Origin: Bugula neritina
Taxonomy: Eukaryota > Animalia > Bryozoa
Assembly: GCA_964035545.1 (NCBI GenBank)
Contig: CAXIUT010000057.1
Coordinates: 75,183-103,230 of the forward strand
Length of the DNA stretch: 28,048 nucleotides
Direction of reading: 5' to 3'
In this document: piece by piece, positions 15,279 to 17,831 of the stretch
Position numbering within the stretch: position 1 is the first letter of the stretch
How the letters are laid out: the number at the start of each line of letters is the position of its first letter
Program-made: the position numbers and the translations under genes
Notes under the pieces: generated by a model
Databases searched by the model: none
What the model was told of the DNA's origin: nothing
What the model saw: the letters and a program-made list of their open reading frames with translations, nothing else

Positions 15279-17831
15279 ATGTAGGCTACAAGCAGACCAG
15301 AGCCATAAACGGCTTTCATGTGCTACACTTTCCTCTAGAACAACAAAAAGTTCATGATACCTATCATTACAAACAAGTATTTCATCAACATCAAAAACAA
15401 CTTTGCAGAAATCAAATCATCCCAGGTCTACAAAAATCCCTTCAATAAACCACTAGAAATTCATTATTCTATTCCGACAGATCCTAATTTCTGTATCACA
15501 AGAGTAGTTGGAGTTTATGATAACATTGAAGTGGAAGGTCTTATCAAAGAAAAATAGACAGTGAAGGCTTAATATAAATAGGCTAAAAACAAAGGAGATA
15601 CAGTTATGATGGCTTCTACTTCTTCATTCTAGAAGTCAATTTTAAGAGTTAGACTAGGAAACTTGCCTTCAAACTAAAGTGTTAAAATTGAATTTGATAT
15701 GATAGGAAAACTATCTAGTTAGTTGCCTAATAGTTGGACTCTAAGAATACCTTCACATATCGGACCAAGATATCAAACCCAAATGGACACCATAAACCAA
15801 CTGTTTAAAGAGTTTCTGAAGAGCAATCCCAATGAAAGTACAAGCTATACCTTTGCTAACTCATAATGGGACTTTAAGATAAACTTATTTTCATCTAAAA
15901 AGTTACTGAAAGCTAGTTCATCAAGTCATAAATTAACTGAAAACATCTTTACAGATTCTTTTAGAAGTTATAACCTAAATTAAGCTAAATTACCTGAAAA
16001 AGATTTGGAATTTACCTTTGAGCAAGATCACTTTGATAAATCAATATGCACTGTTGGATCATCTTGTGTAAATGTGACTTTATTTCCGCCTAAATCAAAA
16101 AAATCTAACTATGATTCATATAAAGGTTAATATATTTTCTTGTTAGACAGATCAGGATCAATGGGAGGTGATAGAATACAAAAAGCTAAATAATCATTGA
16201 TTCTATTCTTGAAATCACTACCTGAAAACTCGATCTATAATATCATCAGTTTCGGTAGTAAATTTTAAAGAATGTTCAAAACAAGTATAGCCTATACTGA
16301 CAACCACGTTGAATAGACAATATAAAAGATCTAAGACTTCGATGCAGACTTCGGTGGAACATAGATAGCAGCTCCTCTTTTAGATATCGTGAAAGTCGAT
16401 AAACAAATGGATAAATATTTGAGACATATTATTCTATTGACTGACGGACAGGTCTTCAATGCTGAATAGGTTATAAAAATCATATCAAATATCAGACATA
16501 ATAATGTTGGTACTACTCATGCTGTCGGAATAGGAAATGGAGTGAGTTTTGATATGATTCGGAGGGGATCTATATAAGGAGGAGGAGAGCATATCTTTAT
16601 TATGGATAATAAATTGATGAAGAAGCAAATTATACAGTTGTTGGAGACGATTACTTCATGCTAGATAAAAGATTTTGCTGTTACTTATGATCAAAAAGTG
16701 TTTCAAACTTGTTATCCATTGATTCCTAGTATTCTTAAAAAAGGAAGATAAAGTTCATTTTTCTTAAGAACTACAGCTCCATTGAGTAACTAAGAATTAC
16801 TAGCTCAAAAGTTGGTAGTTTCATATTTTGATTAATAAAACTAGAAGATGTAAAAATTGTAATTAAAGTTAACAAATGATACTCTTATTCCTGATCTAAA
16901 TAAATATTCAGTCAAATTGGAATTGGATAACATATAGAAAGAAGGAACTCCTGAAAGCAAAGAAGCAATGATAAAAAAAAGTGTATAAAATCAAGTTTTA
17001 AGTAAACATACAGCTTTTATTTGCAAAATAAGATAAAATGCATCACCTAAAGTAGATGAAGGTTACTTGCTTAAAATGAAAAATGCTCTTGAAGGTTTAT
17101 CAAGTATTACATCTGGGAATGGTTTAGTTTATGTAAAAACACTCACTGGAAAAACAGTTTAAATATAAACTAGCATGGGAATTTCAATTTAGGAAATGAA
17201 GAGTCTTATCCAAGATAAAGAGGGAATTCCACCAGATCAGCAAAGACTTATCTTTGCAGGCAAGCAGCTCGAAGATGGAAGAACACTTGCAGATTATAAT
17301 ATCCAACCTGAATCAACTTTGCATTTGGTTTTGAGGTTGAGAGGTGGAGGATGGTCTGTTCAGATATTCCTTCCCAATGGAAATATGGTTCAAGTTGAAG
17401 GTCCTCCTCTTAACTTCCCGATCAGTGGAGTCTATAATAAGGTATATAATGCCTATCCTCATATAAGGAAGTAATGTATTATTCTTTTTACTCCTGATAA
17501 AAAGATTTTGGATCCTAATCCTAAAAATACACTTAAAGATTATGGAATTAATGATAGAAATCCTAAAGTATTTGCTGCAATTCCTCCTTACTTTTTTGGA
17601 AGTCAAGAAATAATAAAAATGATGAAAGTTCAAGGTTATTGGGAATACAATAAAGAAATATTATTCAACCTTGATCTTGAGGACATATTCAAAGCTAAAA
17701 GTAAAGATTATGGAGACCAGAAAAAAGCTATGACTGCATCTATGATTCACCATCTTGAAACAAAGTATCCTACGGAAAAAGAGTAGCTTAAACTAGTATT
17801 CCAGAAGGCCAAAAAGTTTTTAGAAAAATGA
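15279..17831 (+). CDS. VIT-vWA (VWA5A-like) protein with internal ubiquitin domain (LRLRGG), a second UBL and a C-terminal helical tail; 850 aa, intronless
   Basis: VIT: [25 protein letters not shown]...LGNLP. vWA MIDAS: [29 protein letters not shown]. Ubiquitin is at 17121-17348, followed by a degenerate UBL (..[10 protein letters not shown]) and the tail QGYWEY...KAKKFL. TGA is at 17829-17831. Confidence 0.92.
17121..17348 (+). other. Ubiquitin domain embedded in the VIT-vWA protein
   Basis: 76 codons: [76 protein letters not shown]. Residues 30-76 match human ubiquitin except A57 and P63. Confidence 0.97.

Follow-up and report, generated by a model that had tools for sequence, protein, structure and literature searches.

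A VWA5A-type ciliate protein with an embedded ubiquitin and a conserved RLRGG-Gly junction, a candidate natural counterpart of engineered ubiquitin fusions

Here, we describe a gene, termed gene A, in a 28,048-nucleotide stretch of the Bugula neritina assembly GCA_964035545.1 (contig CAXIUT010000057.1, positions 75,183 to 103,230 of the forward strand; hereafter the window, whose own numbering is used throughout). Gene A (15279-17831, + strand) is one uninterrupted gene of 850 codons from a ciliate in which stop codons have been reassigned. Its product consists, from N- to C-terminus, of a VIT domain, a vWA domain with a complete metal ion-dependent adhesion site (MIDAS), a ubiquitin, one glycine, a degenerate second ubiquitin-like domain (UBL2), and a C-terminal domain (CTD) of the VWA5A type. 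Judged by its sequence and by analogy with laboratory constructs, we consider gene A to be, with somewhat better than even probability, a natural counterpart of engineered X-Ub-Y fusions (Ub, ubiquitin), which deubiquitylases cut after Gly76 into two proteins. The main interest lies in the internal position of what looks like a fully competent ubiquitin and in the convergent gain of this arrangement.

Under the bacterial code, the frame contains 36 in-frame stops, all of them TAA or TAG, and is closed by its sole TGA; as only TGA terminates it, gene A reads as one open reading frame (ORF) under a ciliate code. The reading is intron-free, ends with the TGA stop after 850 codons and is colinear with two orthologues, L001 and L002. 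The preliminary description of this DNA translated TAA and TAG (together, TAR) as glutamine, which is wrong. The ubiquitin blocks of gene A, L001, and L002, the three orthologues, together contain 12 TAR codons; eight of these stand on canonical Glu positions (E16, E24, E34, E51, and E64), and at each of the remaining four an orthologue has GAA or GAG at the same site. In addition, paralogue B, a related gene in the window (23030-25802, - strand; 56% identical to gene A over the core), shows Glu at 8 of 17 TAR sites of gene A and Gln at 1 of 17. By these comparisons TAA and TAG encode Glu in gene A, matching a peritrich-type code. Because of the in-frame TAA and TAG codons, stop-free pieces of gene A served as queries.

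The embedded ubiquitin comprises the full 76 residues (17121-17348) and ends in LRLRGG (17331-17348). A stop-free piece of it matched Pfam family PF00240 with an E value of 1.3e-20, and in a phmmer search against PDB chains the piece 17193-17471 aligned to ubiquitin residues 26-76. The block is identical to canonical ubiquitin at 57 of 76 positions and, from residue 30 to 76, at 45 of 47, with S57A and K63P as the only differences; V26M, A28S, and K29L lie just N-terminal of residue 30. Leu8, Ile44, His68, Val70, Arg42, Arg72, Arg74, and Gly75-Gly76 are all present, lysines 6, 11, 27, 33, and 48 are kept, Lys29 is replaced by Leu, and Lys63 by Pro, so that the residue list given in the preliminary description proved correct in every item when aligned to canonical ubiquitin. 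Gly76 is followed by a further Gly (17349-17351), which would be the P1' residue of the predicted cut and is Gly in every family member examined. Gene A thus has a residue other than Pro after Gly76, as fusions processed by deubiquitylases do.

A 72-residue VIT piece, searched exhaustively with phmmer, matched almost only short bacterial-code fragments, because bacterial-code gene calls chop ciliate genes. Two of these fragment matches led to contigs with full orthologues, one from a Logan run (L001, VIT domain 80% identical to that of gene A) and one from a Joint Genome Institute (JGI) metagenome and a Logan run (L002/L003, 60%). L001 and L002, which come from other ciliates with the peritrich-type code, are open when TAR is read as Glu and show the same order of core, ubiquitin ending in LRLRGG, Gly-Trp, UBL2, and CTD. 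Loss of the di-Gly in orthologues had been named at the outset as an observation that would speak against a functional ubiquitin tail; both orthologues keep LRLRGG-G. The proportions of synonymous (pS) and nonsynonymous (pN) differences were obtained from Nei-Gojobori counts among gene A, L001, and L002. For ubiquitin residues 31-76, pS was about 0.74, saturated as in the flanks, at a pN of 0.08-0.11; the respective values were 0.72-0.82 and 0.14-0.29 for the VIT-vWA core, and 0.65-0.74 and 0.30-0.48 for UBL2. In the closest pair of orthologues, pN of the ubiquitin was 0.11 versus 0.14 for the core, and in both comparisons with the more distant L002 the core had a pN of 0.28-0.29, with the ubiquitin lower there. 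The ubiquitin block is thus the best-conserved part of the protein among the three orthologues, whose ubiquitins also have derived changes in common, namely F4Y, residues 13-21, K29L, and the loss of Lys63. Saturated pS with low pN, together with these common derived changes, points to vertical inheritance and rules out a recent gene conversion from a ubiquitin gene; on this evidence the block is old, vertically inherited, and under strong purifying selection. In the peritrichs, residues 13-21 have diverged and Lys63 is gone, both near the ubiquitin N-terminus; these changes may reflect the attachment of the upstream chain.

The same architecture occurs in other lineages. A word-indexed search with P0032, a full-length relative without ubiquitin, gave 120 VIT-vWA proteins among the matches listed. 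Within this set PF00240 is absent from Tetrahymena, Paramecium, and nearly all animal VWA5A proteins, and two groups carry it. One group consists of five proteins from ENA assemblies (P0122, P0125, P0128, P0129, and P0135) with the order VIT-vWA, ubiquitin (62-65 of 76 residues identical to canonical ubiquitin), RLRGG-G, UBL2, and CTD. P0122 is the sole gene on a 3.2-kb contig (L007) that starts with (CCCCAAT)n (L007:1-40), has a GC content of 23%, and uses TAA as a stop, which indicates a gene-sized macronuclear chromosome of a second ciliate lineage. This contig may resemble those of rumen entodiniomorphids. The other group consists of Mytilus RefSeq proteins annotated as 'VWA5A-like', in which a ubiquitin ending in LRLRGG-G occupies the same linker; their ubiquitin blocks have only 44-46 of 76 residues in common with canonical ubiquitin, yet RLRGG-G is kept. 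The assertion that animal VWA5A proteins have no such insert is therefore false for Mytilus, although it holds for the other animal sequences listed. RLRGG-G is found in gene A, its two orthologues, and all nine ciliate and Mytilus homologues examined that have a ubiquitin block, and paralogue B has RMRGG-G. This retention of RxRGG-G in orthologues, paralogue, and two further lineages supports the initial suggestion that LRLRGG is a functional processing site. When only the Ub-UBL2-CTD region of P0122 was used for a word search, polyubiquitins dominated the matches and no further members of the family emerged.

Two contigs from these searches deserve separate mention. In L004 (NODE_1648 of ERZ842375), an AT-rich ciliate VIT-vWA-Ub gene, which encodes P0135, is joined within positions 2700-3100 to a bacterial DeoR/NagB/NagA/MFS cluster (MFS, major facilitator superfamily) of 54% GC. 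A bacterial origin of P0135, as its nag-operon neighbours would imply, was rejected on two grounds: GC content is 24% on one side of the junction and 54% on the other, and the sister sequence P0122 is alone on its telomere-capped 3.2-kb chromosome. Because the jump falls exactly where the CTD is truncated, L004 is an assembly chimera, and the C-terminus of P0135 is misleading. In L005 (ENA ERZ27237442 k141_209705), a relative of the family, VIT and vWA parts are scattered over several frames and interrupted by stops even when TAR is read as Glu, which suggests that the copy has decayed or was poorly assembled.

A maximum likelihood tree of the core was calculated from the shared columns of the VIT-vWA family. 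Gene A falls into a clade with Tetrahymena and Paramecium homologues and environmental sequences (support 100), and the ubiquitin-bearing ciliate proteins as a whole lie within the ciliate clade (support 100). The ubiquitin-bearing Mytilus proteins nest among ubiquitin-free paralogues that are specific to Mytilus (support 100), inside an animal clade that is likewise supported at 100. Forcing all ubiquitin-bearing rows into one clade lowered the log-likelihood by 230 and was rejected by the approximately unbiased (AU) test (p = 3.9e-59; 31 rows, LG+G4). As a single clade is rejected, the ubiquitin insert was gained independently at least twice; every gain placed it in the linker that connects the 'TAF' strand with the CTD, and RLRGG-Gly was retained in all cases. 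The six ciliate ubiquitin-bearing rows group weakly (support 58), and the tree neither establishes nor contradicts one common origin in the ciliates. At one further position, Phe4 of ubiquitin (17130-17132 in gene A), all embedded ubiquitins of both ciliate lineages have Tyr, as do two of the three Mytilus forms compared, with Phe kept in M. californianus; this change may be convergent in ciliates and Mytilus.

The domain order outlined in the preliminary description was upheld by Pfam searches of stop-free pieces, the MIDAS motifs, and alignments to homologues. The VIT domain (approximate limits 15384-15728) matched PF08487 with an E value of 1.3e-8 and 35.4 bits against a cut-off of 26.5 (stop-free piece 15339-15554), and is 60-80% identical to the fragment matches P0001-P0004. 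The vWA domain (16125-16661) aligns to homologues with precomputed PF00092/PF13768 assignments and has a complete MIDAS, with DRSGS at 16146-16160, GGTEI at 16353-16367, and LLTDG at 16434-16448; the Pfam match of its 20-residue stop-free fragment is weak and, taken alone, below cut-off. In the alignments to homologues, the post-vWA region (16662-17120), for which we followed the domain scheme of ITIH1 and Vwa1 (PMC10539598), ends with a linker that follows the conserved 'TAF' strand (17007-17030). Downstream of the ubiquitin and its following Gly, UBL2 (17352-17585) starts in alignment with the N-terminus of the next polyubiquitin unit, is degenerate and lacks a di-Gly; it ends in AAIP, with 81 further residues to the C-terminus. 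These residues form the helical CTD (17586-17828), which contains a G-[YSL]-W motif (17631-17651) and pairs in alignment with animal VWA5A CTDs through Q..G.W and K(A).. motifs. This CTD is common to human VWA5A and Dictyostelium Vwa1 (PMC10539598). VIT domain, MIDAS-containing vWA domain, CTD, and tree placement all put gene A into the VWA5A-type intracellular VIT-vWA family.

AlphaFold models were made for the homologue P0122, not for the gene A protein. In the full-length model, the predicted local distance difference test (pLDDT) score was 80-95 for the core and 77-90 for the CTD (helices at 70-90), and below 50 for ubiquitin and UBL2, a consequence of the almost empty alignment in this part. 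For P0122:735-1003, a second model with a purpose-built alignment gave a ubiquitin at pLDDT 84-94, a UBL2 predicted as a beta-beta-alpha-beta-beta unit at 58-73, and a helical CTD. Its RGG-G segment stayed below 50, as would be expected of a flexible, exposed linker. The top Foldseek matches of the second model were linear di- and tetra-ubiquitin over 132-189 columns.

The intact recognition surfaces, the RLRGG tail, the Gly that comes next, and the retention of RxRGG-Gly across lineages, even where the fold has drifted, lead us to read gene A as a two-in-one precursor. Many deubiquitylases cleave DNA-encoded X-Ub-Y fusions cotranslationally behind the final residue of ubiquitin, unless Pro comes next (PMC3692480). 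By analogy, we propose that gene A encodes an intracellular VWA5A-type protein in which ubiquitin and a decayed UBL2 are built into the flexible linker before the CTD, and that the embedded ubiquitin would offer deubiquitylases of the same cell an internal site for cleavage. The cut would fall after Gly76, between positions 17348 and 17349, probably while the chain is being translated or shortly afterwards, and would release equal amounts of a VIT-vWA-Ub protein of about 690 residues and a Gly-UBL2-CTD protein of about 160 residues. What is a covalent tether between core and CTD in the precursor would become a dissociable contact, and the core would be left with a recognisable C-terminal ubiquitin that might be bound by ubiquitin receptors, extended by chains, or conjugated. 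The Gly after Gly76 could be conserved because the classical N-end rule counts an N-terminal Gly among the stabilising residues. N-myristoylation of this neo-N-terminal Gly was considered and rejected by eye, since the next residues are Trp, Phe, Pro, or Cys and no Ser or Thr stands at position 5, which does not fit the usual motif. Release of the CTD could, as a weaker suggestion, be a maturation step, given the proposal that Dictyostelium Vwa1 is autoinhibited and that separately expressed domains perturb Vwa1 (PMC10539598).

Several points weigh against cleavage after Gly76. The 614 upstream residues or packing of UBL2 could shield the tail, Gly-Gly-Gly may be a mere flexible hinge, and the junction was modelled for a homologue, with low confidence. 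Nor do the lysines point to a common chain-type logic: the peritrichs keep Lys48 and have lost Lys63, the second ciliate lineage has K48E and keeps Lys63, and Mytilus is without both. The earlier characterisation of the protein as extendable through Lys48 but not Lys63 thus agrees with the residues of gene A and fails as a property of the family. In the main rival reading, ubiquitin and UBL2 would stay uncleaved as integral domains, docking to the proteasome or to ubiquitin receptors or making an intramolecular contact, with the three glycines as a hinge. Many multidomain proteins have non-cleaved ubiquitin-like domains, those of Rad23, parkin, and ubiquitin-specific proteases among them, and UBL2 of gene A and the first ubiquitin-like domain of paralogue B, both without di-Gly, are clearly plain domains of this sort. 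However, integral domains normally lose RLRGG, which is here invariant over two origins and recognisable in a much diverged paralogue, and in every eukaryote tested many deubiquitylases accept near-canonical ubiquitin as a substrate, provided that the next residue is not Pro (PMC3692480), so that we regard permanent retention as unlikely.

A third reading goes beyond cleavage and makes the product a giant modifier, an idea already raised in the preliminary description. On this reading, the ubiquitin-activating enzyme E1 would charge the VIT-vWA-Ub protein at Gly76, and a MIDAS adhesion module, with or without Lys48 chains, would be put on target lysines; ciliates and mussels would each have invented it separately. 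N-terminally extended ubiquitins are generally competent for conjugation. The near-identity of residues 30-76, including the Ile44 patch, Arg42, Arg72, and the tail, is held by selection in the ciliates and extends further than a mere protease site appears to require. E1 charging and conjugation are a candidate reading of the intact E1-facing residues, but the Mytilus blocks, diverged in the fold with the tail kept, better fit a cleavage site, and in engineered fusions the reference protein, with ubiquitin at its C-terminus, remains free and long-lived (PMC3692480). We therefore consider a conjugated modifier quite improbable.

An artefact, either an assembly chimera of a VWA5A gene and a polyubiquitin gene or a dead gene, would be suspected because ubiquitin genes are abundant and prone to mis-joins, the L004 contig is chimeric further downstream, and the frame of paralogue B is broken. 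Yet both borders of the ubiquitin are crossed colinearly by Logan contigs of four runs from three studies (X1, window 16293-18033; X2, 16668-18053; X3, 17025-17689; X4, 17027-17251 and 17253-17602), orthologues and distant homologues in independent assemblies have the same junctions, and the 850-codon frame is open with a nonsynonymous divergence (dN) far below the synonymous one (dS). Contig depth jumps 10- to 1000-fold at 17147-17360 in all four runs. This spike is due to ordinary canonical ubiquitin genes in those runs; they match 17147-17360 at no less than 85%, and their loose ends show the canonical sequence SDTIENVKAK. An artefactual origin can hence hardly be entertained.

Gene A resembles VWA5A/BCSC-1 and Dictyostelium Vwa1 in its VIT domain, MIDAS-containing vWA domain, post-vWA region with a 'TAF' strand, and helical CTD with an LQxxDGSW-type motif. 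In described VWA5A/Vwa1 members, however, the linker is merely loose, whereas that of gene A holds a ubiquitin ending in RLRGG-G and a UBL2. The family is already tied to the ubiquitin system, as Vwa1 binds the SCF subunit FbxwD (PMC10539598). As in the fusions of the ubiquitin reference technique (reference-Ub-test protein), which yield X-Ub and Y in equimolar amounts (PMC3692480), ubiquitin stands in mid-chain and is followed by a residue other than Pro; in contrast to these laboratory constructs, which usually carry K48R, gene A is natural and conserved, and its cleavage is predicted. With polyubiquitin and the Ub-eL40 and Ub-eS31 precursors it has in common a ubiquitin ending in Gly-Gly before a downstream partner, cut off by deubiquitylases in those precursors, and its Ub-UBL2 pair resembles a decayed head-to-tail di-ubiquitin. 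In those precursors ubiquitin is N-terminal and released free, whereas the ubiquitin of gene A would stay on a 614-residue upstream protein. In Sde2, too, a ubiquitin-like domain ending in Gly-Gly is removed from its downstream partner by deubiquitylases. ISG15 and FAT10 likewise have two tandem ubiquitin-like folds; they are small and their di-Gly ends the second, last fold at or near the C-terminus, whereas in gene A the di-Gly closes the first fold, and the predicted cut precedes the second. Internal ubiquitin as a processing signal is also known from cytopathogenic pestiviruses, whose polyproteins contain host-captured ubiquitin inserts that are cut by cellular ubiquitin C-terminal hydrolases (PMC8310069); unlike the gene A family, these are products of viral recombination and not a conserved cellular family.

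Both the VWA5A family and the cleavage of linear ubiquitin fusions are thus already known, and sequences of the present kind are deposited in RefSeq and ENA under generic names. The survey of the VWA5A family in PMC10539598 does not mention the embedded-ubiquitin architecture, and limited searches of the open-access literature found no description of a VIT-vWA-ubiquitin protein and none pairing VWA5A with a ubiquitin-like domain. Known ubiquitin genes are N-terminal fusions that release free ubiquitin, so that a cleavable internal ubiquitin would be a different use of the same chemistry. If cleaved, one gene would give two proteins, the larger of which would permanently bear a ubiquitin with a free Gly-Gly end. 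That two unrelated lineages placed the insert in the same linker of the same family, which includes human VWA5A/BCSC-1 and the SCF-binding Dictyostelium protein, suggests that separation of core and CTD, or tagging of the core, matters to the role of the family. Were the conjugation of the whole VIT-vWA-Ub protein to prove true, an entire metal-dependent adhesion module would act as a transferable ubiquitin-type tag.

Paralogue B contains two diverged ubiquitin-like domains. The first (23739-23972, - strand) has lost its di-Gly; the second ends in RMRGG (23297-23311, - strand) followed by Gly, with the CTD directly behind, and this is the only RMRGG-G in the protein. The second domain (23297-23513, - strand) is split by about 121 AT-rich, frame-changing nucleotides near 23375-23495, at which GT...AG borders were not seen on the coding strand. 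To judge from its sequence, this interruption may represent a germline segment that was not excised, an intron of an unusual type, or a lesion in a pseudogene.

The neighbours of gene A are unrelated to it and ordinary, and encode a protein of the penicillin-amidase family, an MBOAT protein, a cytosolic carboxypeptidase, and a dual-specificity phosphatase. Directly downstream of gene A, an ORF at 17759-18664 (+ strand) shows by eye the Cys/His pattern of a RING-CH (MARCH-like) domain, followed by hydrophobic stretches; the stop-free piece 18215-18601, which covers only the hydrophobic part, had no Pfam match. On the opposite strand, one scanned piece of a 1,289-codon ORF (8807-12673, - strand) had no match; by eye, this ORF has a FYVE-like Cys pattern near its start and a C-terminus like that of phosphatidylinositol phosphate kinases, and looks like PIKfyve/Fab1.

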